Assembly: GCA_029953675.1 (NCBI GenBank)
Contig: JAMWBK010000002.1
Location: 930,001 to 994,000, forward strand
Source of the DNA: Rhodosorus marinus CCMP1338
Lineage: Eukaryota; Plantae; Rhodophyta
DNA length: 64,000 bases
Direction: 5' to 3'
A program made the position numbers and the translations under genes. Below are positions 14,901-39,680 of the stretch, piece by piece; within the stretch, counting starts at the first letter, position 1, and each line of letters begins with the position of its first letter. The notes beneath the pieces were generated by a model, which was not told the origin of the DNA, ran no database searches, and saw nothing but the letters and a program-made list of their open reading frames with translations.

Positions 14901-15661
14901 TCAGAGTTGAGGGTGATGGAGAAACACTAAGTGGAGAGAAATGCAGACGGACGTTGAGCAAAACCGACGGCGTAAAGACGATAGAGTGCGACATCACGGA
15001 CAAGAAGGAGGTTGTTCTTCGCGTCGGAGCAGCGAATTCCGGTGTTGGGGAGGAGGTGGCTATCATTGGCGATCCAGTATTTGAGTGCGCATCCAACTTC
15101 GACAAGCCACGTTGCGTTATTACCAAGTTCCCAAGCACATTCACGGTTGGCGAGGAGCTGAAGTTCAGCGGAGTTGCCTACGGCAGTGCTGGGAAAGAGC
15201 TGCCGGAAACCAGCGTTGCATGGTTTATCAATCGACTCCACTGCACTCACGGCGATTGCACCAACCGAGCGGAAGCAACGATCACGGGCACGCTGGAGGG
15301 TAGTTGGATGGTTGATAACTATCAAGACTTTAGCCGGATCGAGATTGAATGTCGCGTGCTAGACAAGGGCGTTTATGCATCTTCGACTGTGCTCGTGGAG
15401 CCGGAGACTATTGAGATTAGCTTGGATACGGAGCCTTCAGGCCTCCCAATGTCATTTGGTGGGAAGGTTGGCCATCCAACTCCGTTCACGGAGCAGGTGG
15501 TCATTGGCACAACGCTTGGATTCGGTGGCCCGGAGGAATTGTCAACTGTTGGTAGGGAATTAGAATTCCGAAAGTGGCTTGACGATTCATCGGAACCTGC
15601 GTTCCGGACGCTGACCTTTACCGAAGATGTTGAGACTTCCTTCGTTGCCAGATACAGATAG
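11912..15661 (+). CDS. Secreted multidomain protein: glucose/sorbosone (PQQ-type) dehydrogenase beta-propeller, Big_5-like Ig domains, NPCBM/NEW2-like domains and a C-terminal Ig/PKD-like region; intronless, 1249 aa
   Basis: Signal-like LAVLFALLFTAGLA. GSDH motifs LYVAIGDDG, GKILRVD..G.GVSGNPW, GIRNAWRF and NVGEASWE..GKNFGWP. Ig-like PPEVVEFVP.DG..GAPVNQTV.VRFS.PMD. NPCBM-like SIRGIKYGKGIG...FRTSIGVDD. Confidence 0.85.
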   Translation: MRGGVSSRLAVLFALLFTAGLAVNFNDPQFELTTVDSDVSTPIGTVFVHGDKEKYLLLELSGVVWLYVNNVKQEQPFLNISSQVAFYGARGLKSCTFDYDFDNYRYLYCSYVNKPPQGDASSPTTGSVSRFVVNSAFTKATFQKVILGTVTSSPGCLNTTLNPIEDDVICIDRNKHSMGGMTMDKEGHLYVAIGDDGSSAGFIPELMVVQENGYLTGKILRVDRNGKGVSGNPWFTSGVSKNENIAKQWNLGIRNAWRFHYSEVDDVVYSINVGEASWESLYALEKGKNFGWPCTQGPIYDLPMMNYTVCQEIQDGKIEAGFNSIWDYAHFFGEPAGTCIVDVMQNTNPDWPSEYSNWLFVVDYDNDWIYRLKVNSTFDMVEGPIEFASGVGSIVNMQPHPDGYVYLTSYKLNTLYRIEYVEDTSPPEVVEFVPYDGSTGAPVNQTVDVRFSLPMDSDTLDAAIELSEKASGETVPVKINFRYEQLTAKVVPESVLKEDTEYEVKVTKASSVNGVDMTSTFTSTFRTNGSYNLEVSDMEIKKSSPEDITLDEQIGGAEISIRGIKYGKGIGFPSVPSTVRVDIPDTCKHFRTSIGVDDVAGFPMTGAMNCLVTVTKNGDPTVVYETRDTLLRYLGQVGVNEDVSGQKLDLECILPSAGPSDTTVGSWGDPQLFCNGYDTDPVKVVSILPTSGTLPYDDPTFTITFDKQMNHKHAFDAIFIETQSANVTATKTFNEDSTVLKITVNPPLLTSNNYQLFLNVGARDVYGNPLAEAQEIIFNIATPAPVGSTVDATAVEPADVSGKGEHEISSDCTVLDKAMTYPRNEKGFGVRGEAKLRFTLDSCTSAIVAFGKSAAHADGRECDLRVKTSGLVAKDLFNDSDLAKRITIDLKGENTLEFVSKSSRATCVFEVESLVCNGEEVNLFDLSLESQEGKWKVDRTPDGSALQLFFSSVEMDTCIKVNPVQRNLHFQLDGLCSSVSAQVGVEAESVGNGDVRFRVEGDGETLSGEKCRRTLSKTDGVKTIECDITDKKEVVLRVGAANSGVGEEVAIIGDPVFECASNFDKPRCVITKFPSTFTVGEELKFSGVAYGSAGKELPETSVAWFINRLHCTHGDCTNRAEATITGTLEGSWMVDNYQDFSRIEIECRVLDKGVYASSTVLVEPETIEISLDTEPSGLPMSFGGKVGHPTPFTEQVVIGTTLGFGGPEELSTVGRELEFRKWLDDSSEPAFRTLTFTEDVETSFVARYR

Positions 15662-16280: not shown

Positions 16281-17545
16281 CCTTTATTGGCTTTATTGGC
16301 TTTATTGGCTTTTTTTGACTTTGGCTTTATTAGCATAGCCTGAGGCGCTACGCATGGAGAGAAAAGCAACTAAGAACTAGGTAGGGAAGCTTGCAACCCG
16401 AGACGCCGGTGGCGCGCCTCGGCAAGCATGTGGCTGAAATATCGCCACAAGGAGACACTCAAACGCCGCAAGAGCATCAAGTATTCAGTAGGATGCTCAG
16501 CAAAACATTTCCGCAGCCATTCCAGACCCGACTTGTCCACATGACAAAAGCTTTCCACAATAAACGGCTGGAACCGGTGAGCGCGACCCTCTGCACAAGG
16601 TAGACTTCATTACCGAAACTACTGGCCATCTTGAGCACAAAGCGGACGCGCAAACGCTCGTACGCGTGGACCTCAATCGAGAGCTATGGCGTGGTACGGC
16701 TCGCTTAGCGATCCATGCCATGCGCAAAGATAATCATGTTCGGACGATGTTCCCTATAGAAAGTAGTCTTCTACCCCACTCTGGGGTCTCCTTAGCGTAG
16801 CCCCTCCTGTTCTCCCCTAGTCTCCCTAGCGCTACATTCGGTAGTTGGAATAAATGAACAAGGTAGACTGGCCATGCTCTCGGCATACTGTCGTTCTTTC
16901 ACCCGACGAACGACTGAAGCGGCTGCACCCCGGCGGCGGCCGGCGGCGGACGGCAGCGGTGAGGTGGGCGCTGGCCACAGGGCAAGTAATCGCGAGGTCC
17001 ACATATGCTGAGCGCCTGGCGGCAGCGTCTGAGACGAGAAAATCAGCGATACAGCGAGGCGGAGTGGTGTCCGAGACTGATCGGGGCAGTTCCGACTCAA
17101 CCTCGACCGTATGCCCTACCCGAGTCAGACATTCGCTGAGGATGTACTTGAGGCGAGTGTGACGCCTCGTACGGAGACCTCTCAACAGTCCGCAGGAACC
17201 CAAGAAGTGGTAGCCACAAGCGTCAATCCGACTCTCACATCCCTGACAGAAAGACGGCCGATTAGAGTGCCACGGAGCCTGTGGCAAACCTAGATAGACC
17301 CGGGCGGCAGAACGGAACTGGAAGGCATCGAGACGGTGACCTGGTGAAGACGGTAGAGTGGTTAACCACAATTACGAGAGGTGGCCGCCCATACCGCGGA
17401 GGCGAGCGGCGGTGGTAGGTGGCGTGAGGGGAGAAGTGAGCAAGATTGAGTGAGCGGCACTGTGTTGGCCCCATGCGAGGCTACGTTGAATCACATCAGT
17501 GCGGGAGCTCCACAATCGGCTCAAGCCCGGGTAATCTGTAGGCTG
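16281..17545 (-). mobile_element. 5'-truncated family A element (Zn knuckle plus RLE), interrupted by a family B insertion; (AATAAAGCC)n tail
   Basis: Near-identical to 43650-44600. CQGC..RIDACGYHFLGSC, IADFLVSD and VDLAITCP motifs. Confidence 0.92.
16607..16857 (+). mobile_element. ~250-bp 5'-truncated family B insertion with 12-bp target-site duplication
   Basis: Matches the B 3' end (25290-25544). ACAAGGTAGACT flanks it at 16595-16606 and 16858-16869. Confidence 0.92.
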
Positions 17546-18639: not shown

Positions 18640-20455
18640 ATACCCCAGACGTAACCGGAAGCTTTCCTGGGCAGCTGCCTACTGCAGCGTAACACTACTC
18701 CTAACACTATCTAGGGAATGGCTTACCAGAACCCCGCTACCGGGGTCTCATGCTACGTTGAAAAGAAAATACAGGCACCAGCGGATTATCCAACTGGTCC
18801 ACACGCAGCGCGCCTAATGCTACCGCCGCGTTCCCTCGCCAAAGATGTCGGTTCAGCTGCGCCCGTACGCCGCTCAACTCCTCGCTGTGATGCAAGAGGT
18901 GCTTGCAACTATCCCGGAGAAACTCTTGTGTCATGATCCCAGTCCGCCCGAACGTCTCGATCGCAATCGGGATGAACTTGTCATCCGGTTTCTCGGCCGC
19001 CATCGCTTCCCTGTAATGTGCAGTCTTCCAGTTCTCAGCGATCTTCGCCGCGTAGCCGTTCTCTTCTTGACTACGCCGCAAGTACTTTCCTTGCAGTGGG
19101 GAAACCACCGTTATATCCAACGCGTACCTTTGCCTTGTCCGTGGATGTGTAGCTATAATATCAGGGCGCAGTCCGTAGTTCTCAAAATACCTCGTTGGTT
19201 CTTGTTCCACGTCTATAAAGTTCCATCGACTCAGCCACCGTGCCACTTCCCCACAGATCTCGTCGTGCCTCCGTTGCCAAAGTCCTGTAGACGTAGGACA
19301 GTGGTGAAACCTTTGGACCCCAGTAGGTCCGTGTCGGCTACGGCAACTCGTGCAGTTTTCAGTGGTTCGCAAACCCGGGATTGGTAGGCCCAGCAGTATA
19401 CGTACGTTCATCTGCATCTCCGCGGCGTTCAACTTCTTCGGCGTCAGCGTCGGTATTTCGCGCAGCCACACTCCCGATCCAGACCCCGCGGCTGACCGTA
19501 TTCGGGCGCGGTTCTCAGGAGACAATCGCAGATTGCTGACTAAGCGCTGGAATGCATAATGGTGTACCTCTCGTGAGAGGGATTGTTGAACGGAACCATT
19601 ATTCCAGGCTGCTGCCTCGTCTGCCTTGTCTCCAGGTGCGGTGGCTTGCGGTGGTTGCAGAGTAGTCAGTCTTAGGATCCGGGGCGGGGTGTCTGGTCCG
19701 AGACTTCGTCGTATTGCGGAGGTCGATTCATGGATCTGGTCCGCCAGCTGTGCAGTCGACCAGGGTAGCTCTGTCGAGGCCGATGTCTGTGACCTGCGGT
19801 CTGCCAAAACCTCCTGCTCGAGCTCAGTGAGGTATGGCCAGTCACCGTGGTTGCTGCGGAAACCGTGAACGCTTTACTCAAGAACTCCCTAGTGGAGCCC
19901 TGGGGAAGAGGACCCCAGTTTAACCCCAGACTGCTGCGTGCCCAGAAGGGGCCGAAGTAGTGGCTCCGCCTTGCCACATGTGCGGTTTCTTGGATAACTC
20001 TGTTAGACGTCTCGTGACACCTCGTAGCTCTGCTGTGCTGTTGATCCTCGAGTAAAGTTGAAATACTGCTTCATAGAACTTATCGACGTCTGACACAGCT
20101 ATGTCCAGGTCTTGGTAGCACCTGTCATAGCTGCGCTGCTTCTTGAGAAAGCTGGAGGCTGGATCATTAGCGGCAGTCGGCGGAGCCCTGAGCCCCGGTG
20201 GTTGTACTTCGTCCTCTTCCATGGTCCTTGCAGCGTGCGTAGTCATTTCATCTTGCGCACCTGTTGTAGTCTCGCGTAGAACAGCTTCTCCCATCGTCGG
20301 AGCTCCCGCTTCACGTGGGAGCGGGAGCAAAAGAGGCTCAGGGAACGGTCCGCGTACCTGCCTCACTAGCATAATAATCTTACAAACTTATTTTTGAACC
20401 TTATCCAATTCTTTCACGTATAACCAAACCGCAGAACCCCAGACTAAAGTAACTG
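18640..20455 (-). mobile_element. Internally deleted family C element: 5' ORF1 piece joined to Zn-knuckle/RLE C-terminus, no RT
   Basis: The 356-codon frame has CTSC..HHC, RRHDEI, LRPDII, LDITVVSP, ENWKTAHY and FIPIAIETFG. No RT motifs lie between the ORF1 start and this frame. Confidence 0.85.
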
Positions 20456-20499: not shown

Positions 20500-23400
20500 A
20501 AAGTTGAGGTGGTGACAATCAACAGGTTCCACTGGCTCGGAAACGTTGCCTGTAAGGCAGGGCTCCTAGTTGGAAAAAGAAGGTGGAATTTTGCTTGGTA
20601 TCCGAGACGCACAAGTCGTTTTGCACGTTGTACACGAGAAGAAGATCGGGCCGCGATGGATATTGGGCAAGGAGAGCCCCCGGGCCCCGAAAACCTTACT
20701 ACGGAGAGCTCTACGACAACTACAAAAGGAAAAGTTGCGGACGGAGGTCCGCCAAACGGGCAGCCGATGGCCGCGGTACCAGTGCCACTCTCTTCAAACC
20801 AGAGCGGGAATCTAGCGCCTTCTACAACAAATGGGGACTGTTTTGACTCCAAAACCTTCCTCGCCCGATGTTCCGCCATGACCACCGCGTACCTGCAACT
20901 GGAGACCCCGCAAGCCGAGATCAGTCGGTTCTTCCACCTTGTGGAAGAACTGTACACTCACGCAACTCGGAAGGAGGAGTTGCAGACCCTGAACTCACGA
21001 CTTCAAGAGTTATGCCAGATGCCCAACCGCAATGCCCAGCGCCCACGCCCGAGTATGCCCGGCAACCCCCGCCCTGCCCCAACGCCTACGGCCGCCGGCG
21101 TGAGATTCGCCTCGAGATTCGACAATCAACACACCGATAATGACTGCCCTGCCAATCAACTTTCTGATTCTGAGTTTCCGCCTCTGCGTGCTGAGGGGCC
21201 TCAGCTGCGTCGTGTGCCCGGCAGCTACGCTCACGCGGTTCGCGCTACTACCCCTGTGCTTCCTGTGCGTCGTGCTACCGTTTACTCACCCGCAAATGAC
21301 CTTACGCAGCAGCAAGGTCTGAGGCACTTGCACGCAGCGGTCGGTGCTACTACATGGACACTTGATACAGCACCAGTCCTCGGCACATTTACCAACCTCC
21401 GGCCCCCCCGAGCTCATCCAACGTCACCACGGGACCTGTCAGCATATCTCGCGAGAGCACTTGGGATGAACTCCCAACAACTCGTGCATGTGGACTACAT
21501 ATCCTCACACGTATTTGCAGTTCTCCATCCTGATGTTGTTCCACTGGTGCAGAGTGCCATAGACAGGGGTGTATTTCGCAAAGGCATGTTCGCTGCCTTC
21601 GCCACACGCCCGGAACAGTACCAGATCAAGTTTGATACTACTCGGACCCCGAAAGGCTCTCTCCTGGTCGGCTTCACTGAGAGCCGCGGTTTGACAGAGC
21701 AGGAGTACTCGACATTTGTGTTGCGACGCGCGGACGAACAAATGGAGAGATTGCGGAGTCAGATTTCCAGGAGACCAGTCGGATTCCGGATCATGAACCT
21801 CGTTTTCCAGGCTATCGATGATCGTATAGAGTGTTTACAAAGCTTGGAAAAGCCTATCCATACACCACGGTCTGTTGGCGATGCCGCTGGGAACGGGAGA
21901 AAGGAGCCCGCTGAGTCCCCCGCTTCGAACCTGGCTACGGCGGACGATTCCTCGCAGGGTTTGGATGCTCAGGTCTCGGCCACGGTCTGTTGGCAATGCC
22001 GCTGGGAACGGGAGAAAGGAGCCCGCTGAGTCCCCCGCTTCGAACCTGGCTACGGCGGACGATTCCTCGCAGGTTTTGGATGCTCAGGTCTCGGCCACGA
22101 GTTCGCACGAAGGGCCACTAGACAACACCCCGGAAGTTCGCCAAAGCGACTCTCCAACAACACCGCCTCACCGACCCTCTTCATCGTCACAGTCCAACCA
22201 TGAGGCAATGGACCTTGACTCCGCAAGTGCACCCGAACATGAGGCGGGCAGGCAGCTAACCGCAGCCGAGGGCGAGAGTCAGCAAAGCAAGAAACCCCGC
22301 GTTGAGACAGCTGAACAAGAGGACCCCTCTCCTCAAGCATGACGGGGCGTCGTCCGAGTTCTAATCCTCGCTCGCGTAAGAGACTCCGCCAACCCCAGTT
22401 GTTCTACATGGACGTGGACCGCTGGATTACTCGGCTTGACATGTTCCTGCAAAACCTCACTGAAAATGGTACCATTTGGTGGGCTCTGACTCACTCTCCC
22501 ACGAATACGCGAGAACACGTCCCTTCGGGACAAGTCCCAGCATGGAGCGCGCTGTTCAACTATGCCCTGGAACTAGCCCTGGATGACAGCGCCCCGGACC
22601 TGCGCCGCCTGCTCGTCCAGGTACTGCCTAGTTTGATGCTAGGCTACGCTCGCGATCTCAACCCGCCCGCCCAACTTGAGATGCTGCTTGAAGGTGACTT
22701 CGAATCCCTATGGGGTGCCCTTTCTGCCACGCGGCCGGGCCCAAATGCCGCTTCTTCTGGAACTCGTATCCCGCGCTCGTCGTTTTCCTGCCGTCATGTA
22801 CTCCATGAGGCGAAACATCGTCTCTCTCCCACGCAGCGCAGCACATTCTTTCGACTCCCCTCGCCCCCAGAACTCCGCAAACCTGGAAGGCCCTCGAAGA
22901 TCTGTTCCCGGACGTTCCCGACGCGGTCCTGCACCCCCAACTCGAAGAGTGTTTGTCTGCAAGGCTCACTGACCCTGCACCTCTACAAAGCCCTCAGTGG
23001 AACGCGCGTACCGCCTCGGATGAATCGCTCCTTGCCCTTCTCCAACGGCTTCCCGCGGGTATAAGCCCAGGCCCGAGTGGACTTCGTGTGGAACACCTGC
23101 AGGCTCTCGAACAACATGTACGCCCAGCTCTGGTCCGGTTTCTTCGCACGATTAGCACGGAACCTGAGAATTTGCCCGAGATCCTACTTCAAAGTATACG
23201 GAGTAGTCGCCTTGTACCTCTGGCTAAGAACCCCAACTCGGAGTCGGTGCCGTCTTCACCCCGCCTCCGCCCAATCGGTATTCCCGAGGTGCTACGTAAC
23301 GTTGCTTCGCAGTGGGTCCTACAACACGTCGTGCCCCGCGCTCGCGATTTTCTGCTGCCCACTCAGCTCGGTGTTGGAGTCTCCGGGGGCAGTGAAGCAG

Positions 23401-25544
23401 AACTTCACACAATCCAGGCTCACCTACATTACGAACCCGCTCACATTCTTCTGAGACTTGATCTGGAAAACGCATTCAATCGCGTCAATCGCCGGCTTGC
23501 AAAACGCATCCTCGAAGCGCGCTTTCCGGAGTTGCTCCCACTATATGTGCTTGGTTATGGTCCTGATTCTGCAAATGGTTCGTACCACTTTGGCTGGTTA
23601 CCCGAAGAAGGCTCCCTCTCCTCCGCGCGAGATCGCTTCTTCCTCCGCTCGCGTACTGGCGTTCAACAAGGCGATCCTCTTGCACCAGTGTTGCACGCCC
23701 TGGCTCTTTCGCCCTATCTTATGGCGATGCGCAGTCTCTTTCCCAACATCACGGTACTCGCGCTCCACGACGACGTCAGCTTGGTTGGCCCCTACTACCA
23801 CATTCAAGAGGCGTTTCACTGGAGTCAAAGAGTTTTGAGCTCGCTCGGCGCTCGATTGCAACCGGATAAGTGCGTTCTCTTCGGCCATAGGATCGATTCG
23901 CCGCGGTTTGTCAACCATGACTTTCCCGCAGTTGAGGTTACGAGGCAAGGCGTGATGCTACACTCTGTCCCAGTGGGCACGCGGGCCTTTGTCATCCGAG
24001 CCTGCCGCCAGCTGCAAAACACACACGCCAAGCTCGTCAAAGGGATTCAGAAACTCCCCGAAGGCGAGTTGCAGACGAAGCTGGCCCTCTTTCGCTACTG
24101 TGCTGGTCCGCGGCTGGACTATCACCTCCGGTGCCTGGCTCTCCCTTTTGGCGCGCTTCTTGCCACTGAGGCGGACACAATCACCATGCACGAGTTGGAT
24201 ACGCTGTGCGGAAGTCTGCTTACACTCCAAGGACTCCCACCGGAGGAGTTGAATACCGTGAAAGCCCAAATCCGCTTACCTGGCAAGTGGGGAGGGCTTG
24301 GTTTGGCTACGCGCGTTCGTATTCACCCGATCGCTTTTTATGCCGCGTGGCTCGGCACGCTTCAGAATAATTTTACTTGCAATGCCTTCCTGCGCCGTCT
24401 GGGTACGGCGTGTCGCGGGGCCGACCCCAGTGCCGAACATATTCTCGAGGATCTTGCCAGCTCAACGGATCAACTGGAACAACAGCTCTCCCTGGCTAGC
24501 CGATGGACAACTTCCCGCCTCAGCTCCCGCACCTCTGCTCGTATTCGAAAAATCGCTCTCTGGTCTACGGCGCTTCCACAGGTGATCCCGCCACTGCTTC
24601 CACCAACCCTCCGCTCGCAGGTCCTCTACAACAAATACTCTCTCAGGAGAGTCACCGTAGAGCGTTTGAGGATATCGTGGATAACTCTGCTCTCGACGAC
24701 CGCACCAGGGCTCGGATCCGATCCGCTTCTGGTGCCGGCGCTGGTGGCTGGCTTTGCAACCTTCCTAGCACAGGGTCTGAGCTCCTTTCCACTGAAGAAA
24801 TTCGCTACAGTCTACGCCTGCTTCTTGGCCTCCCGATACCTGGTCTCCGCACTACACCTGAATGCACTGTTTGTGCAAGGCCCATGCGGCGGATGGGACT
24901 CAGCGTCTCTTTCACTGCCCTACCTCGGCTGGGAATTGGACTCTGCGCCATAATCGCATTCGTGATGAGCTCGCGCGTCACCCTCGCCGGTGGCACATTC
25001 CTGATGTTCAGGTCGAGCCTTATGGGTTTTTTGAGGGTAGTCGTCTCCGCCCCGACATAGTCATTCGTCATCACCGCACAGGTAAGCAGTATGTCATCGA
25101 CGTCAAGGTGGAGTCCCCCTTACGGGCCCATCTCCTCGCCCGAGCCACCTGTCAATCTGGTTATGCGGCCGCCAACGCTGAAGCCGGGAAACGAGCGAAA
25201 TATCGGGATGCCATCGGTGATCATAATGACTTCCAGTTTGTACCCTTTGCCATCGAAGGCTTTGGACGACTTGGCCAAGCGGCCCAAGACTTCATTACCG
25301 AAACTACTGGCCATCTTGAGCAGAAAGCGGACGGGCAAAGGCTCGTATGCGTGGACCTTAATCGAGATCTATGGCGTGGTACGGCTCGCTTAGCGATCCA
25401 TGCCATGCGCAAAGATAATCATGTTCGGACGATGTTCCCTATAGAAAGTAGTCTTCTACCCCACTCTGGGGTCCCCTTAGCGTAGCCTCTCCTGTTCTCC
25501 CCTAGTATCCCTAGCGCTACATTCGGTAGTTGGAATAAATGAAC
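20500..25544 (+). mobile_element. Near full-length CRE-like non-LTR element, family B (ORF1; ORF2 = RT, CCHC and RLE), frameshifted
   Basis: ORF1 20509-22340. ORF2 from 22339 with SPGPSGLR, LRPIGI, LDLENAFN, GVQQGDPLAP, ALHDDV, LPGKWGGLG, CTVC..LFHC, RPDIVI, DVKVESP and FAIEGFG. Confidence 0.93.
21865..22094. repeat. 115-bp tandem duplication that frameshifts family B ORF1
   Basis: CCACGGTCTGTTGGC...GGTCTCGG at 21865-21979 and 21980-22094. Confidence 0.93.
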
Positions 25545-25693: not shown

Positions 25694-26137
25694 TTAGCAG
25701 AACATCTCTTCCAGTTTCTTCGAGCACTTTTTATCCAGCGAGTAGGTGCTAGTCCCGCCACTGCCACCTTCGTCCTTGCAAATCTTCTTCTCACAGCCTC
25801 GCACCGAACCAGAGTTGGGGTACTCCTTCCCTTTACATCTTCTATGCCAACTAGGATCCTGAATCCAGGTGCCAGGACTCATGCAGTACCAGTCCTTGGT
25901 ATCAGGGTGCTGAGCTACGCACCAGTGGCCTTGCCCGCCCTTAGAGCAATTGCGCCTCATTCCAGAATTGAGTTTAGACCCGGTCAACTTCACGATTTGG
26001 CTCCTCACATAGTACGAATAGCGGTAGAGGCAGGAGGGTTTGATATCACAGCACTTCAAGGCTGGTTCCTCTGTGGCCCAATAGGCCTGCACAGCTCCAC
26101 AAAGCAAAACCATCGCAAAAACGATTCCAGTCTTCAT
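25694..26137 (-). CDS. Small secreted cysteine-rich protein 1 (147 aa, unknown family)
   Basis: Signal-like MKTGIVFAMVLLCGAVQA. 11 Cys in the mature part, all conserved in the paralog at 29221-29676. Confidence 0.8.
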   Translation of the reverse strand: MKTGIVFAMVLLCGAVQAYWATEEPALKCCDIKPSCLYRYSYYVRSQIVKLTGSKLNSGMRRNCSKGGQGHWCVAQHPDTKDWYCMSPGTWIQDPSWHRRCKGKEYPNSGSVRGCEKKICKDEGGSGGTSTYSLDKKCSKKLEEMFC

Positions 26138-26484
26138 CTTCATGAATATTTTGTGCAAGACAAATCTTGTGCAGACGGGCGTTGACCCTTTTTCAACGGT
26201 TCCTGCTATCAATGTCCACAAACATGCCACAACGTCCCTCTACCATGGACACATATACCTTTTCTCAACCGCACGTCTTCACCCGCAAAGTCCTACACCT
26301 AAGCATTTGCTCTGCATCAGCAGCAACAAATATTGCCTGTTTAGACACGGTCTTAGCTTGTTTTAATGCTACGGCTTACCAACGCCAGTGCGACAGCGTG
26401 CTTCCAGAATATCCCTCTCGCTTGTTTCCTTGTTTCCAAACACATTCCTGCGGCCTGTATTCTCGTTTTTTGGAAAATAATGTC

Positions 26485-26961
26485 AATCCTTGCTTTCCGG
26501 TGGATATTTTGGAAAAACTGATATCGTGCCAGGGTTGGAATTTCGTGGCAATATGCTAAGAAATTCCACCGGAGTAAGCAAGGGTTCTATTCCGCCAACA
26601 GGGAAATTTTTCCCATCAGAGCTCTACCCCTTAACGATGAAGATTCCCACGCCGCGAGAGATGGGTGACGAATGTCACATGCGAATTGTCGTTTGGCCTG
26701 GGAATCTAACTGAATCTGCATCGTTAAGGGGTAGAGCTCTGATGGGAAAAATTTCCATGTTGGCGGAATGGAATCCTTGCTTTCCGGTGGATATTTTGGA
26801 AAAACTGATATCGTGCCAGGGTTGGAATTTCGTGGCAATATGCTAAGAAATTCCACCGGAGTAAGCAAGGGTTCTATTCCGCCAACAGGGAAATTTTTCC
26901 CATCAGAGCTCTACCCCTTAACGATGCAGATTCCCACGCCGCGAGAGGTGGGTGACGAATG
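26485..26961. repeat. Direct duplication (~190 bp, period 287) with an interposed inverted copy
   Basis: 26485-26674 matches 26772-26961. 26712-26769 is the reverse complement of 26876-26932 with one mismatch. Confidence 0.9.
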
Positions 26962-28069
26962 GAAAAGATGTCTGCGTTGTTTTTATTTCCGCAAAACTCG
27001 GCTTTAACGGGCTAAGTGAATGTGTTTCAAAGTATTGCGACGTGAGCTGGATATTTTGGAATCAAGACAAAATCGCACCGAAGTTGGTACTCGTCGTAAG
27101 TCCGCAGCATTAAATAGGGCCTACTCGTTGGCGAAGGCGACTTAAATTTCCAACATGCGAAGATATTTGACGCCCACAAATATAATCGTTATCTTTTCGC
27201 AGACTCCATTGGATCTCGTTGGCTTGGGAGAGATTCCGCGGTTCAGTCAAGAGGCTCAAAGAGAAAAAAACTGAATGGACAATAGCTGAGGTTACACAAG
27301 TGGGTTAGGTGAACTGTAGCGAAGATCTGGCAAGGAGTTATGATAAAAGAACAATTATTTGTGGGTGTCACATGCGAATTGTCGTTTGGCCTGGGAATCT
27401 AACTAACTGTTTATTCGGAGGCTGAGGGAAAAAAAAATGATGATGATACAGTCTCTCCATAGAGATGACCTTTGTAAATCGAAGGGCATGTCTCGCTCTC
27501 CAATAGAAACGGACTTTTTCGGATAAAAAAAGGGGCGTTACGTGGAGTCTGGGCTAATAACCCCAACCTAATACTTAATGATCAGGGCTTGAACGGGCTT
27601 TGCATGAATACGACGGCGAGGACGACTTAATTTTCCAACAAGCGAAGATATTTGACACCCACAAATATAATCGTTTTCTTTTTGCAGACTCCATTGGATC
27701 TCGCTGGCTTGGGGAGAGATTCCGTGCAAATAGATGTCATCTGCACAGGCCAAACACAATCAGCTATCATCATCGTCTTCTTTCCCGCTTCTGTTTGGGT
27801 AGTTAGGCACCCTGAGAATCTGCCTATTCAGCTGTGCTTTTGACCAGCCCGTAGATTTTCTTGTGCTAAAATCATCAGCTTTTCAAGAGATAAAACGTCA
27901 GCCAAATAAGTCGCCTAACAAGCAAAAAGGAGCTTTTCGGTAGTAAAAACGAGGCAGACGAATGAAAAACTCCCTTTCAGGCGCAAGTGGGAAACTGCTC
28001 AGGAGCCTGGAGTTTTCTCGTATTCACTCAATGCCCGTTGAAGCCTTCCTCAGCAAGTGCTAGTCTGGG

Positions 28070-28295
28070 GTTACGGTGGGTTCCCCACTGCAAGGAAAGT
28101 ACTAGAGGCGTAGTCAAGAAGCGAATGGATACGCGGCGGAGATAGTTGAGAACTGGAAGATTGCACATTGCAGGGAAGCGATGGCGGCCGAGCAACCGGA
28201 TGACAGGTTCATCCCGATTGCGATCGAGACGTTCGGGCGGACTGGGAACATGACACAAGAGTTTCTACGGGATAGTTGCAAGCACCTCTTGCATC
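28070..28295 (+). mobile_element. Family C RLE fragment in the spacer of the inverted duplication
   Basis: SPLQGKY..RSQEANGYAA..ENWKIAH..FIPIAIETFGRTG matches the 18737-19807 frame. Confidence 0.85.
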
Positions 28296-29220
28296 CAATG
28301 GAGTCTGCAAAAAGATAACGATTATATTTGTGGGTGTCAAATATCTTCGCATTCTGGAAAATTAAGTCGCCTCCGCGACGAGTAGGCCCGCTTTAATGCT
28401 GCGGCCTTGCGACGACTACCAACTTAGGTGCGATTTAGGCGTGCTTTCAAAATATCCAACTGCCGTCGCAACACTTTGAAATACACTCACCTAGCCAGTT
28501 AAAGCCGAATTTTTCGTACATAAAACAACGCAGATATCTTTTTCCATTCGGCACCCATGTTTCGCGGCGGGAATCTGCATCGTCAAGGGTTGAGCTCTGA
28601 TGAGAAAATTTTTTTTTATTTCCCTGTTGGCGAAAGAGCCCTGCTTACCATCAATAAAGACCTTTATTGACACCCATAGCCTGAGGCACTGGTTTCCTTT
28701 GGCCTCCGAATGAACTATTCGGGTTGGAGGCAAAAAAAAAGAATTTTACCACAAAACGAGATCTCATCAAAATGCCTAGCTGGGGGCAAAAAAAAAGAAT
28801 TTTACTCCAAACGAGATCTGATCAAAATTGCCTCTACAAGTTCACGAATGGGGAAAGTAAGTACTGGCTGGATGAACGTGACGGGTGGGTGAAAAAACTA
28901 TTTTAGACCAACGCACCAAGGGTATGGGATATTCTGGAAGCGCCGCTATCTCACTGGCATTGTTAGCTGTCGCAATGCCACAGCTTTAAAGCTGGCTTTA
29001 TTTAGCATGGCAGAAATAAGCGAAATTTCATGCAGTCGATCCGGAGGGAATATTTGGGGTAACGACTTTGCGGGTAAAGACGAACAGTTGAGAAGGGTAT
29101 ATGTGTCCACGGTAGAGAGAGACGTTGTGAGATGCTAGTGTTCGCTGATAGCAGACACTGCTGAGAAACGGTAAAGGCCCGTGTGCACAAGATTTGTCTT
29201 TGCACAAAATATTCGTGAAG

Positions 29221-29676
29221 ATGAAGACTGGAATTGTTTTTGCGATGGTTTTGCTCGGTGGAACTGTGCAGGCCTATTGGGCCAAAGAGGAACCCGCCAT
29301 GAATTGCTGTGATATCAAGGCGTCCTGCCTCGGTCGGTACGGTAAATTCAATGGAAACGAGTATATTAAAACTGGTGTAGTGAATGGAGCCATAAGGCAA
29401 CAATGCACAAGCGAGGGACGGGGTCATTGGTGTGTGGCTGAAGTGTCTCATGCCAGCTCTCCATCGGGAGGGGGTTGGTACTGCGTGAGTCCTGGTTACT
29501 TCATGCGGTCCAATTTTCCGAGGTCTTGCAAAGAAGGCAAATGGCCCAACTCTGGCTCAAAGCGAGGCTGCGAAAAGAAAACTTGCAAGAGCGAAGGTGG
29601 TAGCAACGACGGAAGCAGCGGTGTACTGGACAGAAAGTGCGCGAAGGAGCTCGAGAGGAGATTCTGCGAGGATTAG
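29221..29676 (+). CDS. Small secreted cysteine-rich protein 2 (151 aa), paralog of 25694-26137
   Basis: MKTGIVFAMVLLGGTVQA signal and the same 11-Cys skeleton (CC-C-C-HWC-WYC-C-PNSGS.RGCEKK.C-C-FC). Confidence 0.8.
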   Translation: MKTGIVFAMVLLGGTVQAYWAKEEPAMNCCDIKASCLGRYGKFNGNEYIKTGVVNGAIRQQCTSEGRGHWCVAEVSHASSPSGGGWYCVSPGYFMRSNFPRSCKEGKWPNSGSKRGCEKKTCKSEGGSNDGSSGVLDRKCAKELERRFCED

Positions 29677-30179: not shown

Positions 30180-33100
30180 CGCGAGTGCACCCGAGTTTGA
30201 GGCGGGTAAGCAGCTAACCGCAGCCGAGGGCGTGAGTCAGCAAAGCAAGAAACCCCACGTTGAGGCAGCCGAACAAGAGGACCCTTTTCCTCAAGAATGA
30301 CGGGGTGTCGTCCGAGTTCTAATTCCCGCTCGCGTAAGAGACTCCACCAACCCAAGTTGTTCTTCATGGACGTGGACCGCTGGATTACCCGGCTTGACCT
30401 GTTCCTGCAAAAACACACCGAAAATGGTCCCATTTGGTCGGCTCTGACTCACCCTCCCACGAATACGCGAGAACACGTCCCTTCGGGACAAGTCCCAGCA
30501 TAGAGCGCGCTGTTCAACTATGCCCTGGAACTAGCCCTGGATGACAGCGCCCCGGACCTGCGCCGCCTGCTCGTCCAGGTACTGCCTAGTTTGATGCTAG
30601 GCTACGCTCGCGATCTCAACCCGCCCGCCCAACTTGAGATGCTGCTTGAAGGTGACTTCGAATCCCTGTGGAGTGCCCTTTCTGCTAAGCGGCCGGGCCC
30701 AGATGCCGCTTCTTCTGGATTTCGTACCCCGCGCTCGTCGTTTTCCTGCCGTCGTGTTCTCCATAAGGCGAAATATCGTCGCCTCTCCCAAGCAGCGCAG
30801 CACATCCTTTCGACTCCCCTTGCCACCAGAACTCCGCAAACTTGAAAGGCCCTCGAAGATCTGTTCCCGGACGTTCCCGACACGGTCCTGCACCCCCAAC
30901 TCGAAGAGTGTTTGTCTGCAAGGCTCATTGACCCTGCACCTCTACAGAGCCCCCAGTGGAACGCGCGCACCGCCTCGGATGAATCGCTCCTTGCCCTTCT
31001 CCAACGGCTTCCCGCGGGTATAAGCCCAGGCCCGAGTGGACTTCGTGTGGAACACCTGCAGGCTCTCGAACAACATGTACGCCCAGCTCTGGTCCGGTTT
31101 CTTCGCACGATTAGCACGGAACCTGAGAATTTGCCCGAGATCCTACTTCAAAGTATACGGAGTAGTCGCCTTGTACCTCTGGCTAAGAACCCCAACTCGG
31201 AGTCGGTGCCGTCTTCACCCCGCCTCCGCCCAATCGGTATTCCCGAGGTGCTACGTAACGTTGCTTCGCAGTGGGTCCTACAACACGTCGTACCCCGCGC
31301 TCGCGATTTTCTGCTGCCCACTCAGCTCGGTGTTGGAGTCTCCGGGGGCAGTGAAGCAGTACTTCACACAATCCAGGCTCACCTACATTACGAACCCGCT
31401 CACATTCTTCTGAGACTTGATCTGGAAAACGCATTCAATCGCGTCGATCGCCGGCTTGCAAAACGCATCCTCGAAGCACGCTTTCCGGAGTTGCTCCCAC
31501 TATATGTGCTTGGGTATGGTCCTGATTCTGCAAACGGTTCGTACCACTTTGGCTGGTTGCCCGAAGAAGGCTCCCCTTCCTCCACGCGAGATTGCTTCTT
31601 CCTCCGCTCGCGTACTGGCGTTCAACAAGGCGATCCTCTTGCACCAGTGTTGCACGCCCTGGCTCTTTCGCCCTATCTTATGGCGATGCGCAGTCTCTTT
31701 CCCAACATCACGGTACTCGCGCTCCACGACGACGTCAGCTTGGTTGGCCCCTACTACCACATTCAAGAGGCGTTTCACTGGAGTCAAAGAGTTTTGAGCT
31801 CGCTCGGCGCTCGATTGCAACCGGATAAGTGCGTTCTCTTCGGCCATAGGATCGATTCGCCGCGGTTTGTCAACCATGACTTTCCCGCAGTTGAGGTTAC
31901 GAGGCAAGGCGTGATGCTACACTCTGTCCCAGTGGGCACGCGGGCCTTTGTCATCCGAGCCTGCCGCCAGCTGCAAAACACACACGCCAAGCTCGTCAAA
32001 GGGATTCAGAAACTCCCCGAAGGCGAGTTGCAGACGAAGCTGGCCCTCTTTCGCTACTGTGCTGGTCCGCGGCTGGACTATCACCTCCGGTGCCTGGCTC
32101 TCCCTTTTGGCGCGCTTCTTGCCACTGAGGCGGACACAATCACCATGCACGAGTTGGATACGCTGTGCGGAAGTCTGCTTACACTCCAAGGACTCCCACC
32201 GGAGGAGTTGAATACCGTGAAAGCCCAAATCCGCTTACCTGGCAAGTGGGGAGGGCTTGGTTTGGCTACGCGCGTTCGTATTCACCCGATCGCTTTTTAT
32301 GCCGCGTGGCTCGGCACGCTTCAGAATAATTTTACTTGCAATGCCTTCCTGCGCCGTCTGGGTACGGCGTGTCGCGGGGCCGACCCCAGTGCCGAACATA
32401 TTCTCGAGGATCTTGCCAGCTCAACGGATCAACTGGAACAACAGCTCTCCCTGGCTAGCCGATGGACAACTTCCCGCCTCAGCTCCCGCACCTCTGCTCG
32501 TATTCGAAAAATCGCTCTCTGGTCTACGGCGCTTCCACAGGTGATCCCGCCACTGCTTCCACCAACCCTCCGCTCGCAGGTCCTCTACAACAAATACTCT
32601 CTCAGGAGAGTCACCGTAGAGCGTTTGAGGATATCGTGGATAACTCTGCTCTCGACGACCGCACCAGGGCTCGGATCCGATCCGCTTCTGGTGCCGGCGC
32701 TGGTGGCTGGCTTTGCAACCTTCCTAGCACAGGGTCTGAGCTCCTTTCCACTGAAGAAATTCGCTACAGTCTACGCCTGCTTCTTGGCCTCCCGATACCT
32801 GGTCTCCGCACTACACCTGAATGCACTGTTTGTGCAAGGCCCATGCGGCGGATGGGACTCAGCGTCTCTTTCACTGCCCTACCTCGGCTGGGAATTGGAC
32901 TCTGCGCCATAATCGCATTCGTGATGAGCTCGCGCGTCACCCTCGCCGGTGGCACATTCCTGATGTTCAGGTCGAGCCTTATGGGTTTTTTGAGGGTAGT
33001 CGTCTCCGCCCCGACATAGTCATTCGTCATCACCGCACAGGTAAGCAGTATGTCATCGACGTCAAGGTGGAGTCCCCCTTACGGGCCCATCTCCTCGCCC

Positions 33101-33522
33101 GAGCCACCTGTCAATCTGGTTATGCGGCCGCCAACGCTGAAGCCGGGAAACGAGCGAAATATCGGGATGCCATCGGTGATCATAATGACTTCCAGTTTGT
33201 ACCCTTTGCCATCGACGGCTTTGGACGACTTGGCCAAGCGGTCCAAGACTTCATTACCGAAACTACTGGCCATCTTCAGCGCTACTGACCATCTTGAGCA
33301 CAAAGCGGATGCGCAAACGCTCGTACGCGTCGACCTCAATCGAGAGCTATGGCGTGGTACGGCTCGCTTAGCGATCCATGCCATGCGCAAAGATAGTCAT
33401 GTTCGGACGATGTTCCCTATAGAAAGTAGTCTTCTACCCCACTCTGGGATCTCCTTAGCGTAGCCCCTCCTGTTCTCCCTTAGTATCCCTAGCGCTGCAT
33501 TCGGTAGTTAGAATAAATGAAC
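30180..33522 (+). mobile_element. Second family B copy, 5'-truncated at the end of ORF1
   Basis: Direct repeat of ~22225-25544 at an offset of about 7959 bp. Same 666-codon RT frame. Confidence 0.93.
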
Positions 33523-33794: not shown

Positions 33795-34490
33795 CTTTAT
33801 TGGTGGTGGTCTTTACTGGGTCTTTACTAGCATAGCCTGGAGCGCTACGCAAGGCGTGAAAAGCAACTAAGAACTAGGTAGGGAAGCTTGCAACCCGAGA
33901 CGCCGGTGGCGCGCCTCGGCAAGCATGTGGCTGGAATATCGCCACAAGGAGACACTCAAACGCCGCAAGAGCGCCAAGTATTCAATAGGATGCTCAGCAA
34001 AACATTTCCGCAACCATTCCAAACCCGACTTGTCCACATGACCAAAAGTTTCCACAATAAACGGCTGGAACCGGTGAGCGCGACCCTCTACACAAGGCAG
34101 ACTGGCCATGCTCTCGGCATACCGTCGTTCTTTCACCAGGCGGACGACTGAAGCAGCTGCACCCCGGCGGCGGGCGGCAGCGGTGAGGTGGGCGCTGGCC
34201 ACAGGGCAAGTAGCATAGCCTGAGGCGCTACCCAAGGCGTGAAAAGCAACTAAGAACTAGGTGGGGAAGCTTGCAACCCGAGACGCCGGTGGCGCGCCTC
34301 GGCAAGCATGTGGCTGGAATATCGCCACAAGGAGACACTCAAACGCCGCAAGAGCATCAAGTATTCAGTAGGATGCTCAGCATAATATTTCCGCAACCAT
34401 TCCAGACCCGACTTGTCCACATGAACAAAGCTTTCCACAATAAACGGCTGGAACCGGTGAGCGCCACCCTCTGCACCAGGCAGACTGGCC
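33795..34490 (-). mobile_element. Two short family A 3' fragments fused head-to-tail
   Basis: Both end in ...RHRRLGLQAS.PSS* plus the 3' hairpin. Junction GGCTATGCTA|CTTGCCCTG at ~34210. Confidence 0.92.
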
Positions 34491-35149
34491 ATTCTTTTAT
34501 TCAGAATAAGTCCACTCTCGCCTATTGAGGCGCACCTCTGCTCGCGACCGTAGCGAGGCCTTGACCCACCCAAAAAAAAAACTGCGGCGTCGGGGGCGCG
34601 CCTCAATTTACGATACGGGGACGCGGTTTTCAGGAGCTGCACAGCTGTCCAGAGCCGCATTTGACTGTGCACCTCGAACGACCAAGAAGCGTCAGCACTT
34701 CATCGGCCGGATGTCTAGCACGTTTAAGGTTGACGATACGATCAACTAAAACGTGACACACTTGAACTATGGAAAACCGCCGGATCCGTCGCGGGAGTAC
34801 AAGCTTCGCGTGTTGCTGGGTTCACTGCGCGACAGTCTGCCAGTGGCACTAATAACAGACGATCCTGAACAATGTGAATTGCTCGTACAAACGCCAAGAC
34901 CAAGGATATTTTCTTCCCAAAGGATTTCAGGCAGGATTCTTGAATGAAAAGAATTTCTTCGTCGAAACTAGGCAGATTCTGCCTGAAGACAACCAACAGA
35001 TCAGATTCCGCGATGCCAACCGGGGTCCAAGTTTCCTCTGACTCTTTCTCGGGCCATCCCCACTTCGCGCAAATGTGGTCGTGGGGTCAATCTCATCGTA
35101 AACGCTTCGCGGGCCCAGGGCAAGACAAGCCCCTTTAAAGCTTTGGGAA

Positions 35150-36925: not shown

Positions 36926-38509
36926 TCAAGGCAAAATGACGTTCCCGCTGGCATCTCTTGGGACGAACTCATCGCTGACCGCGACGAACGCGACTTTGTA
37001 CTCGACAAAGGACTGGTCTGGCATGGAATGGTCCTGATCGTGCATTTTGAGCTCGACTGGGGTTGCTTGCATCGAGAATACCGGCTGGGTGAGGAAGACG
37101 TGCTGGTTTGAGATTATCGGTTGAGGGTAGATGAAAGTGTTGGCGTCGAAGACGTCGAGCATAATTCTGTGCCACCAGTCCACGCCAAAGTCCAGGATCT
37201 CATTCCACACAGGGTTTAGCTCATTGTTCATTACGGTGCTCGTCTTCTGCTCCAAGTAGGTGCCATCCGCCCGGTAAGCCCTCACTCGGACGAAGGGGTC
37301 AGATGGCGTCGTGGCATCGAGTCTTCGCAGATTCATTCCATGCTTCACGTCCACCTTCAGAGAGCCGAACCGTTTCTCGCAGAAATCGCCGTAAAAACCC
37401 GGTCTGCACTCACAGATCGGAGCATTGGATCCGCTCCTACATCTCCCGCCGCTCATACACGGATTGGGGTAACAGTAATTTTTCGCGGGCTCTGCAACTA
37501 TCCTAACTGAGACTGAACTCGAACAGTCATACAGTGTTCTACAAAGCTTGACAACGTAGTCCCGGTGAATTATTTGCAGACGCGAGTAGGGGATGAAAAC
37601 TTCCGTAGCGTCCTCATCGAGCTTTGAGACCCTGATCTTCAAAGCCACCCAAGTGCCGACATCGAAGTAAATCGGCCCTGGAAGCGTCACCGGACCTGAA
37701 CCACGCGGTGCGCCAGAGGACCTGACCATCGGTGGAAACCGACCGGGAGCCATGTCCGAGACCTCAAAGCTTACCACAACCTCATTTTGAATGCGTTTTC
37801 GTGCAATAACCTCCACTGAAAGCCTCATACTTTGAGCCCTGAGGGGGCATCTATACATCATCATTAGACTCCTCACATCCCTGCCGCTGAGGGTGGTGAC
37901 AGGAACGAAGTCTAGATTGCTCAGGGTGGAAATTGTGTCCCTGCCGTTATTCGAGAGAAAATTGGAGCCATATTGCATAACAGAAATCCGATCGAAGTCA
38001 TGTTCGAGAGGATCCACTTTGCTCCAAGAGATCTTGTTCAACATTGCTCGATTCGACTTCGCGACGTTGCCGGGGAGAACCCGAAGGAATCGGTCTCGGT
38101 CAGGACGGTTATACTCATCAACAAGGCCCAGGGCGTGCCCCACCTCGTGGAATACCTGTGATCGGAGGGGGATCGATCCGGGGCAGTCTCGGTTTATGTA
38201 AACAGAGTGTTTCCCTGGACCGCGATATCCGACTTTGGTCTTATAGCATCTATTAAGATTCGACTTGAAGAGAAGTCCGGTTTCCGCCTGTTGAGAGTAG
38301 ATGAAGCCGAGACAGGTTTCATCCCGGATAAGACGCAAGACACCAACCACGTCATCTCTGGCCTCCGAATCTACGTTGTCATGAAATCCAAACTTGATCA
38401 CCTCAGTCGGCCACAGTCGTGAGGCGTCCCTCAAGCTCACCGCCGCTCGACTTTGAGCGACCAGAAAACACACAAATATCGACAGAATCCAGTTCACACT
38501 GAACTCCAT
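36926..38509 (-). CDS. Secreted astacin-like (M12A) metalloprotease with EGF and C2 domains; intronless, 527 aa
   Basis: Signal-like ILSIFVCFLVAQSRA. HEVGHALGLVDE..RPDRD zinc motif and SVMQY Met-turn. CYPNPC..GGRC..CECRPGFYG..C EGF. SDPFVRV..NNELNPVWNE..DVFD C2. Confidence 0.88.
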   Translation of the reverse strand: MEFSVNWILSIFVCFLVAQSRAAVSLRDASRLWPTEVIKFGFHDNVDSEARDDVVGVLRLIRDETCLGFIYSQQAETGLLFKSNLNRCYKTKVGYRGPGKHSVYINRDCPGSIPLRSQVFHEVGHALGLVDEYNRPDRDRFLRVLPGNVAKSNRAMLNKISWSKVDPLEHDFDRISVMQYGSNFLSNNGRDTISTLSNLDFVPVTTLSGRDVRSLMMMYRCPLRAQSMRLSVEVIARKRIQNEVVVSFEVSDMAPGRFPPMVRSSGAPRGSGPVTLPGPIYFDVGTWVALKIRVSKLDEDATEVFIPYSRLQIIHRDYVVKLCRTLYDCSSSVSVRIVAEPAKNYCYPNPCMSGGRCRSGSNAPICECRPGFYGDFCEKRFGSLKVDVKHGMNLRRLDATTPSDPFVRVRAYRADGTYLEQKTSTVMNNELNPVWNEILDFGVDWWHRIMLDVFDANTFIYPQPIISNQHVFLTQPVFSMQATPVELKMHDQDHSMPDQSFVEYKVAFVAVSDEFVPRDASGNVILP

Positions 38510-39680
38510 GTCCACAAAGTCCAGGTCCACAATCAAACACTTCTTTTCTGGCGAGCTTGTGAGCTTCAAACGCCGTCTTCCGAACGACACGAAACAGTGA
38601 TAGCAACCTTGATCAGACTTATACTCTCCTGGCTGGACGGGTTGGTCCCGTTCCGAGTTGTCAATTAAACCACCTTCCGCTCTTCAAGTTTACCTCTTCG
38701 CCCTCTCCCTATCACATCGCGGAGACTCGAGAGAGCCTGAGCCCCTTTCATAGAGTCCGCTTAGGGTTCCCTCCCTACTGGAAATAGCTCGTGAAAACCC
38801 TCTTGTAGATTCAAAAGCTCGAGGTACCATTCACCGCTCGCCTCTTCAGGAATGCAAGGGCGGTACCCATATCGCCGCCCGTTCCCAGCACTTTACTGTA
38901 AAACGGTTTTTCGTGATGGTGCAGCCTTGGCGGTGTCTAGGATCCCCAAAATCTATTCAAAAATCCCCTCCAAAAACACAAAAACGGGCGCTTGCTCGGT
39001 ACCCACCAACGTCCCAGACCGCAACTGGGTTTCTAATCTTTCCGCGTAGCCCTAGCAACATATCGGTATATACGTTTTCTAGTTAAACTGATATTGGCAG
39101 AGGTTGCCATAGGCATACTCCTCCTCCAATTCATGATTACATTGAAATGCTTAGCTCCTCCATCGATCGTTCTACCAAGACACTCTCCCCTTCTCCCAAG
39201 TCCAACGCATTCATGTCGATGAATGTGTTTTTCGGAAGGGCGCACACTATCGGTGGTTATCCCCAAAATTCCTACCCCATTTTTTTGAAGTTTCTATACT
39301 CAATCCAGTAAATGTTTGCTTTAAGTTTTTAGAGGGGAAAGGTTTTTTTTTCTCAAACATTGCGTTTTAGCACATTGAGTTGATATTACCATCCGTTCCT
39401 ATTAATTGAGAATTAAGTCCGTCTGTAGACCAATTGGATTTTTTTGAGAAGAGAGTTTTTGAATTTATTTTCAAAGCTTTTTGTGTGCAGTCTATGAGTT
39501 CGTGAGAAAAGAACAATTTAATTGGTCTTCTATTCGCGTGGAATATCTTCACGCGGCCAACGCGGAGAGCGCAATCAAGATCGAGCTAGTCAGGGCTGAA
39601 CATCATTTATTCAGCCGTGTTGGGTGTTAACCGAAAACAATGAACTGGTTTATAGCGGATTGAAACTGGAATTTGATGTT

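Follow-up and report, generated by a model that had tools for sequence, protein, structure and literature searches.

Inverted gene pairs whose arms are kept alike by arm-to-arm gene conversion are exemplified by the inverted hsp70 pairs of Drosophila and by the palindromes of the human Y chromosome. Among extracellular modules, the fibronectin type-II (FN2) domain is a four-cysteine unit (C1–C3, C2–C4) with an N-terminal C-x-F-P-F aromatic cluster. Here we describe a pair of small, predicted secreted, cysteine-rich proteins, A and B, encoded head-to-head in an imperfect palindrome within a 64,000-nt stretch of the Rhodosorus marinus CCMP1338 nuclear scaffold JAMWBK010000002.1 (hereafter the window, whose numbering is used throughout), and we compare the locus with such systems. 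We consider it probable, at roughly 60%, that A and B are old paralogs of a rare secreted family whose 5′ ends were homogenized much later, and that their products would serve as binding or matrix modules rather than toxins.

Rhodosorus marinus is a unicellular stylonematophycean red alga, and NCBI assembly GCA_029953675.1 is its nuclear genome (PMC10250338). Across public assemblies, protein B is encoded at a single locus, that of JAMWBK010000002.1 (3.48 Mb) in GCA_029953675.1. Both genes are intact, intronless and divergently oriented, and occupy the following positions:

25694–26143, minus strand: coding sequence of gene A, stop codon included, for a 149-residue secreted-type protein with 11 cysteines (P0002); identified from the open reading frame (ORF), its translation, a single-exon GenBank model and family homology

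26084–26143, minus strand: signal peptide of A (MKMKTGIVFAMVLLCGAVQA), with predicted cleavage before YWA, assigned by inspection and the von Heijne −3/−1 rule and aligning with the hydrophobic N-termini of the family

29221–29676, plus strand: coding sequence of gene B, stop codon included, for a 151-residue secreted-type protein with 11 cysteines (P0001); identified from the ORF, its translation and a single-exon GenBank model

29221–29274, plus strand: signal peptide of B (MKTGIVFAMVLLGGTVQA), assigned by inspection as for A

The enclosing ORFs span 25694–26230 (minus strand) for A and 29194–29676 (plus strand) for B. Translation starts at the ATG at 26143 (MKMKTG...) in A and at 29221 (MKTG...) in B, so that A begins two codons earlier, its first ATG being represented in B by an in-frame GTG at 29215. 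The proteins share 54% identity (BLASTP, E = 5e-56), and all 11 mature cysteines align between them, A carrying one further cysteine within its signal peptide. Each N-terminus has, by inspection, the n-region, hydrophobic core and V-Q-A ending of a cleavable signal peptide, and the two differ at only two of 18 shared residues (positions 15 and 17 of the 20-residue peptide of A). Downstream of the signal peptide, both proteins consist of a core of ~90 residues with eight cysteines, a Gly/Ser-rich linker and a short three-cysteine tail. The mature products are basic (pI 8.7–9.0, net charge +5 to +9) and have a mass of ~14.6 kDa.

A HMMER search run exhaustively over 1.84 billion representative proteins returned 12 matches at E ≤ 1e-3, comprising gene A's own protein (P0002), nine true relatives with hmmsearch E-values from 1e-28 to 5e-4, and two low-complexity false positives (P0005 and P0012), which were dismissed. 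Word-indexed protein searching proved lossy, recovering only A and B themselves and later adding just P0023–P0025. The resulting family set comprises the R. marinus proteins A–D together with P0004, P0006–P0011, P0013 and P0023–P0025, and reciprocal pairwise tblastn among members gave E-values from 1e-8 to 1e-32. The closest relative (E = 1e-28) is the R. marinus paralog C (KAJ8901408.1 / NDN08_007254, UniRef A0AAV8UIP8), which lies on scaffold 11 beside a fourth copy, D:

6945–7361 of locus L007, scaffold JAMWBK010000011.1: paralog D (138 residues), in direct tandem with C

10001–10411 of locus L007, scaffold JAMWBK010000011.1: paralog C, 3 kb downstream of D

Both C and D are intronless and are flanked by housekeeping genes (FGGY kinase, ferredoxin, epimerase and iron superoxide dismutase, Fe-SOD). 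They share 77% identity, with a synonymous divergence (dS) of 0.78 and a ratio of nonsynonymous to synonymous divergence (ω, dN/dS) of 0.17. Variants of the C type are present in two MMETSP transcriptomes, indicating that paralog C is transcribed. Four copies are thus seen in R. marinus, as a lower bound, and tblastn revealed no further copies or pseudogenes within the 64-kb window. About ten further relatives occur, all in eukaryote SRA (Logan) or ENA metagenome contigs (Logan runs SRR2327xxxx, SRR19164831 and SRR32518362; ENA assemblies ERZ6863655, ERZ6863514 and ERZ26858540), where the adjacent sequence encodes secreted proteins that lack annotation or belongs to a Ty3-like element. Rfam gave no match for these sources, and a search for publications citing the runs found none. 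A metagenome scan yielded a single additional locus (L010), which was judged spurious. In the sequences searched so far, the core is confined to R. marinus and a handful of other eukaryotes.

Members share a core framework of ~90 residues, CC-x5-C-x~24-C-x8-C-x10-16-C-x14-C-x13-C, with the motif GRxxWCVA...W[YW]CxSPGxF. A and B conform to it, carrying WC[VA]A and W[YW]C-x-[SA][PA]G and retaining all eight core and three tail cysteines, although A departs from the family at two otherwise conserved positions, lacking the glycine of TG-x-Y and carrying W in place of F after SPG. In an alignment of 17 domains, C1, C2 and C4–C7 never vary, and only the P0010 domains lack C3 and C8; this joint loss hints at, but does not prove, a C3–C8 disulfide. 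Two relatives depart from the single-domain plan: P0004 (L003 459–1412, Logan SRR23274232) consists of three tandem eight-cysteine cores without the Cys-rich tail, and P0010 (L009 348–1289, Logan SRR19164831) has a Kunitz/BPTI-like domain followed by two core copies. Tandem repetition and the Kunitz-like fusion show the core to be an autonomous extracellular module. All single-domain members have, by inspection, a hydrophobic N-terminus with small residues at −3/−1, and beyond the core they carry a linker rich in G/S and a tail that contains three cysteines or, in rare cases, five. Added to the core, such a tail gives an odd total of 11 or 13 throughout, and the conservation of this odd count suggests one free or intermolecular cysteine.

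Pfam scans of A, B and 14 members produced no match at a cut-off as loose as E ≤ 10, and a PDB sequence search with a 14-sequence profile gave nothing credible, the best remaining match, MD-2 at E 0.25, being attributable to chance. A marginal match to the P2X receptor, obtained with a two-sequence profile (E ~7e-4, summed over two overlapping weak stretches), vanished with the 14-sequence profile and was rejected as chance. AlphaFold2, which on two sequences alone gave an unusable model with a predicted local distance difference test (pLDDT) score of 38, predicted from a 15-sequence alignment a small alpha/beta domain at residues 5–93 (core pLDDT ~77–87), ordered helix–strand–helix–strand–strand–helix, with a disordered, unmodelled linker and a helix at the C-terminus. 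Foldseek found no neighbour of this model in the PDB (best E 1.7, template modelling score (TM) ≤ 0.24) and no match at E < 0.7 in BFVD; a MANEC/PAN match at E = 4 was not meaningful. Literature searches likewise recovered no description of the family. The initial annotation had recognized no family for the pair, which holds in that no described family fits at the level of Pfam, PDB sequence or predicted fold, but must be amended in that the HMMER and tblastn relatives make up a small undescribed one. Collectively, these comparisons place A and B, which are not orphans, in a rare, undescribed family of small, predicted secreted, disulfide-rich proteins.

The two genes have a mosaic history that is apparent from their divergence, for which Nei–Gojobori, LWL85, YN00 and maximum-likelihood estimates agree. 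Over the whole coding sequence dN is ~0.36 and dS 0.94–1.2, with ω of 0.30–0.36. Codons 1–39 show a proportion of synonymous differences (pS) of only 0.15–0.28 (dS ~0.2), whereas from codon 40 to the stop pS rises to 0.55–0.95, dS is 1.5–3.4 or undefined and ω is 0.14–0.32; the contrast in synonymous differences between the two parts is highly significant (Fisher p = 2e-6). At the nucleotide level, identity is 85–95% over the first ~115 nt of coding sequence and 60–92% over 280 nt upstream, remains at 84–86% in a distal upstream block, drops abruptly to 42–64% at 26029/29329, and is absent beyond the stop codons. Over codons 1 to ~39 and those upstream stretches that can be aligned, which are spread over ~1.2 kb, divergence is only ~10–16% (84–91% identity), with a sharp boundary to synonymously saturated sequence.

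The mirrored DNA itself is far beyond chance. Its proximal part (26027–26292 against 29064–29331) is 85.5% identical with E = 8e-75, its distal part (26891–27214 against 28293–28612) is 86% identical with E = 2e-95, and sensitive alignment extends these matches into colinear inverted blocks (27214–26861 with 28293–28648, and 26432–25697 with 28909–29667). The components are as follows:

25697–26026, minus strand: old outer part of A, from codon ~40 to the end, with the core from C4 and the three-cysteine tail; 42–64% nucleotide identity to B, pS 0.55–0.95, saturated

26027–26432, minus strand: young inner arm, left, proximal block, with the 5′ flank, 5′ untranslated region (5′UTR) and first ~39 codons of A; delimited by the identity profile and low dS

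26485–26961, no strand assigned: recent local duplication in the left arm, with 190-bp units (26485–26674 and 26772–26961) that are 99% identical

26861–27214, minus strand: young inner arm, left, distal block; aligns at 84% identity with 28293–28648 in inverted orientation

27215–28292, no strand assigned: palindrome spacer, ~1.1 kb of repeat and transposable-element debris containing copies of window repeats

28293–28648, plus strand: young inner arm, right, distal block; aligned to the left distal block

28909–29331, plus strand: young inner arm, right, proximal block, with the 5′ flank and first ~37 codons of B; aligned to the left arm

29332–29667, plus strand: old outer part of B, by the same comparison as for A; similarity stops at the stop codon

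Within the spacer, 27615–27724 is a direct copy of 27130–27238 (92%), and the edge at 28073–28295 matches the reverse complement of 18889–19111 (93%). The left-arm duplication contains internal 71-nt inverted repeats, resembling a miniature inverted-repeat transposable element or foldback structure, and finds only partial matches in the right arm: 26574–26674 corresponds to 28545–28648 (78%), and 26861–26961 lies inside the distal block. What had been observed at the locus is borne out by these alignments together with the single-exon GenBank models, namely two divergently transcribed intronless ORFs, near-identical signal peptides, 11 conserved mature cysteines, mirrored upstream DNA forming an imperfect palindrome, and strongly differing inter-cysteine loops, the contrast between signal peptides and loops being real.

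Two comparisons argue that the inner and outer parts differ in age rather than in selective regime. Paralogs C and D are already unalignable upstream of their coding sequences at a dS of 0.78, and non-coding DNA cannot remain alignable at dS > 1.5; the DNA from the spacer to codon ~39 must hence have a far more recent origin than the remainder of the two genes. In addition, the upstream non-coding DNA is conserved as much as the signal-peptide end, which speaks for a 5′ gene-conversion or replacement tract and not for a selective contrast between signal and mature peptide. Outside the young tract, A and B still share 47% amino-acid identity, against 38–39% to C, so that they remain mutual closest relatives beyond it. 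From about codon 40 onwards the coding sequence is under purifying to relaxed constraint, with ω of ~0.15–0.35, and because its synonymous sites are saturated, the loop differences reflect age and not a demonstrable acceleration.

The most parsimonious account of these observations would be a history in three steps. An ancient local duplication would have produced A and B. Much later, arm-to-arm gene conversion or a partial inverted re-duplication would have overwritten one copy, from the promoter through the 5′UTR and signal peptide to mature residue 18, with the corresponding sequence of the other. Later local changes would include the 190-bp duplication in the left arm and the insertion of 3.3-kb reverse-transcriptase (RT) element copies, transposable elements having filled the spacer and flanks. 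The homogenized 5′ regions that A and B share suggest that the two genes are probably co-regulated.

As to function, our best inference is that A and B are stable extracellular binding or matrix-associated modules. This role is suggested by the signal peptide and disulfide-locked core, by the threefold tandem core and the Kunitz-like fusion in relatives, by purifying selection and low copy number, and by the apparently constitutive transcription of a sister paralog in ordinary cultures. Being basic (pI ~9), the mature proteins would be well matched to the negatively charged sulfated polysaccharides that coat red-algal cells, which makes that coat an obvious candidate partner.

Several points weigh against this account. 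The proposed role is drawn from architecture and selection regime, with no ligand, structure match or genomic-context clue, and the AlphaFold2 model is only moderately confident, with the tail unmodelled. No R. marinus transcriptome-derived MMETSP protein at least 90% identical or close to A or B was present in the protein database searched. Between A and B the C3–C4 loop is nearly randomized or unconstrained (dN 0.9–1.3), its ω estimates are unreliable because dS is saturated, and, with dS in that state, positive selection at a few loop sites, though unsupported, keeps a small probability. Finally, gene conversion and partial re-duplication cannot be told apart from one genome.

An extension of the same account would join these threads more closely: the core would be a new extracellular fold or domain, the odd cysteine would form covalent dimers, and A and B, being co-regulated, would have C3–C4 loops that diverged for different binding specificities. 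If so, the pair would represent neo-functionalized recognition or adhesion modules and not the outcome of drift. We hold this combination to be a tentative possibility with the odds clearly against it.

The initial annotation favoured a different explanation, in which A and B are toxins, antimicrobial peptides, effectors or recognition or pheromone proteins whose loops have been driven apart by diversifying selection while signal peptide and cysteine scaffold stayed fixed, in the manner of conotoxins or defensins. The superficial pattern does match: the signal region is ~90% identical and the mature region ~47%, the C3–C4 loop has been almost scrambled between the two, the proteins are small, basic and Cys-rich, and their neighbourhood is rich in transposable elements. 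The rates, however, argue otherwise, since pN/pS (the corresponding ratio of uncorrected proportions) stays below 1 in every window, with a maximum of 0.78 in any 20-codon window, ω is 0.14–0.36, and synonymous sites are saturated wherever the proteins differ, a state that also makes the value for the loop by itself unreliable. Nor does selection on the peptide explain why the non-coding DNA upstream equals the signal peptide in conservation, a feature absent from C and D. The same loop is well conserved between C and D (pN 0.11–0.17) and contains positions conserved across the family, all of them intact in B but some missing from A. Copy number, at about four as a lower bound, does not suggest a large, rapidly turning-over multigene family, and R. 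marinus lives freely as a single cell and is not known to have a host or prey. Diversifying selection, which had been proposed on the basis of the loops, finds no support in these comparisons, and we regard a toxin-like role as unlikely.

Equally to be doubted is that A, B or both have fallen silent and are decaying among transposons as leftover duplicates, with neutral drift accounting for how they differ. The lack of a transcript-derived database match, unlike for paralog C, would fit such a fate, as would the retroelement ending 150 bp from the stop codon of A and the loss of family-conserved positions in A. Against this, both ORFs are intact, the 11 cysteines and core motifs have been retained despite dS > 1, ω (~0.3) is clearly below 1, and the 5′ regions have been kept homogeneous; drift without function is thus improbable.

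More improbable still is the suggestion that A and B are highly divergent FN2 or kringle-type domains that bind ligands as FN2 modules do. It arises from the UniRef label of C-type proteins, 'Fibronectin type-II domain-containing protein', and from the resemblance of C-[TS]-x-x-G-R-x-x-W-C ... W-Y-C to the second half of FN2. Yet none of the 14 members matches Pfam fn2 at E ≤ 10. A hidden Markov model (HMM) built from nine FN2 domains, which were confirmed by Pfam fn2 (E from 1e-14 to 1e-21), scored the family unfiltered at ≤ 8 bits, against a Pfam cut-off of 22.2 bits, and only over the 13–16 residues of the C-T-x-x-G-R...W-C motif. In a profile–profile comparison with hhalign, FN2 and the family core aligned over 11 columns at a probability of 2.1%, and neither the PDB profile search nor the Foldseek list, the latter from a moderately confident model, contained an FN2 or kringle chain. 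The N-terminal C-x-FPF half is missing, and the core has eight cysteines instead of four. FN2 membership is rejected on profile threshold, four-cysteine module and fold, and, judged from sequence, the UniProt label on the paralog, probably assigned through a PROSITE profile, derives only from the short motif.

That the palindrome is a long-read foldback chimera is barely credible: head-to-head symmetry in a long-read-era assembly might raise the suspicion, but artefactual foldbacks are near-identical, whereas these arms are only 69–91% identical, differing by 9–31% with different indels and repeats, and the encoded proteins agree at little more than half of their residues.

The surroundings of the pair are eukaryotic and rich in transposable elements, with RT-bearing repeats at 18–25, 30–33.5, 40–46 and 52–54 kb of the window. 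Two direct copies of one retroelement, 97% identical over 3343 bp and in the same orientation, bracket A and B:

22222–25544, plus strand: flanking retroelement copy 1, RT-bearing (RVT_1 domain), 97% identical to 30180–33522 over 3343 bp and ending only 150 bp from the stop codon of A

30180–33522, plus strand: flanking retroelement copy 2, starting 504 bp past the stop codon of B

An ORF following the RT (24862–25485) resembles, by eye, a CCHC motif with a PD-(D/E)xK restriction-like endonuclease, as in R2/NeSL-type long interspersed nuclear elements. A third copy, at 16602–16870, comprises the 3′ ~270 bp only, which is consistent with non-LTR (lacking long terminal repeats), 5′-truncated insertions. 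Another RT-bearing repeat family is found at 40354–46410, 16315–17540 and 33808–34495, with tandem and inverted copies 83–98% identical and fragments throughout the window. Two further genes were observed. At 11858–15661 (plus strand), a 1267-residue uninterrupted ORF carries glucose/sorbosone dehydrogenase (GSDH), bacterial Ig-like (Big_5) and NPCBM domains; its architecture looks bacterial within a red-algal scaffold of 3.5 Mb, and horizontal transfer is possible. At 36926–38590 (minus strand), an intronless ORF encodes a metalloprotease of the astacin type that also bears EGF and C2 domains, a further secreted or extracellular-type protein near A and B.

Early-branching red algae have a very poorly known secretome, to which the family adds an uncatalogued extracellular domain, predicted to be rich in disulfides, that has neither a Pfam entry nor a structural neighbour in the PDB or BFVD and counts about a dozen members among 1.8 billion representative proteins. 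Its description also sets right the 'fibronectin type-II' name that a paralog had received automatically on weak grounds. The locus has no bearing on long-standing questions, and nothing about it indicates a toxin or a new mechanism. Its wider use is as a caution: a partial conversion tract, or replacement of the 5′ end in an inverted duplicate, can mimic the signature of a conserved signal with a hypervariable mature peptide, which is usually read as diversifying selection, and A and B offer a clean, small example of that trap.

Comparison with known systems places the pair more precisely. The nearest counterpart is the C/D pair, which shares with A and B a signal peptide ending A-YWA, the eight-cysteine core, the three-cysteine tail, local pairing, the lack of introns and 39–42% identity. 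It differs in being a transcribed direct tandem 3 kb apart among housekeeping neighbours, 77% identical and without 5′ homogenization, whereas A and B are inverted, much more diverged, embedded in transposable elements and without a transcript match in databases. FN2 and kringle domains (FN2, PF00040) resemble the core in C-T-x-x-G-R...W-C followed by aromatic–aromatic–C, and in being small, repeatable, disulfide-rich extracellular modules; the core differs from FN2 in length (~90 against ~42 residues), in having eight cysteines against four and no C-x-FPF half, and in failing HMM, profile–profile and fold comparison.

The small secreted cysteine-rich proteins of fungi and oomycetes and genes of the conotoxin and defensin type are like A and B in size, signal peptide, fixed cysteine framework, lineage restriction and transposable-element surroundings, as well as in a conserved 5′ end joined to a divergent mature part. 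A and B have no sequence or fold relation to them, however, are few in number and show ω < 1, and their 5′ conservation reaches into non-coding DNA, which is best explained by gene conversion. In this last respect the locus resembles the hsp70 pairs and the Y-chromosome palindromes, which likewise have head-to-head arms of uniform low divergence with sharp edges to much older sequence. Unlike in those systems, the converted or re-duplicated tract at the R. marinus locus takes in the promoter but no more than ~39 codons of each gene, so that the proteins A and B would stay different while sharing their regulation and export signals.

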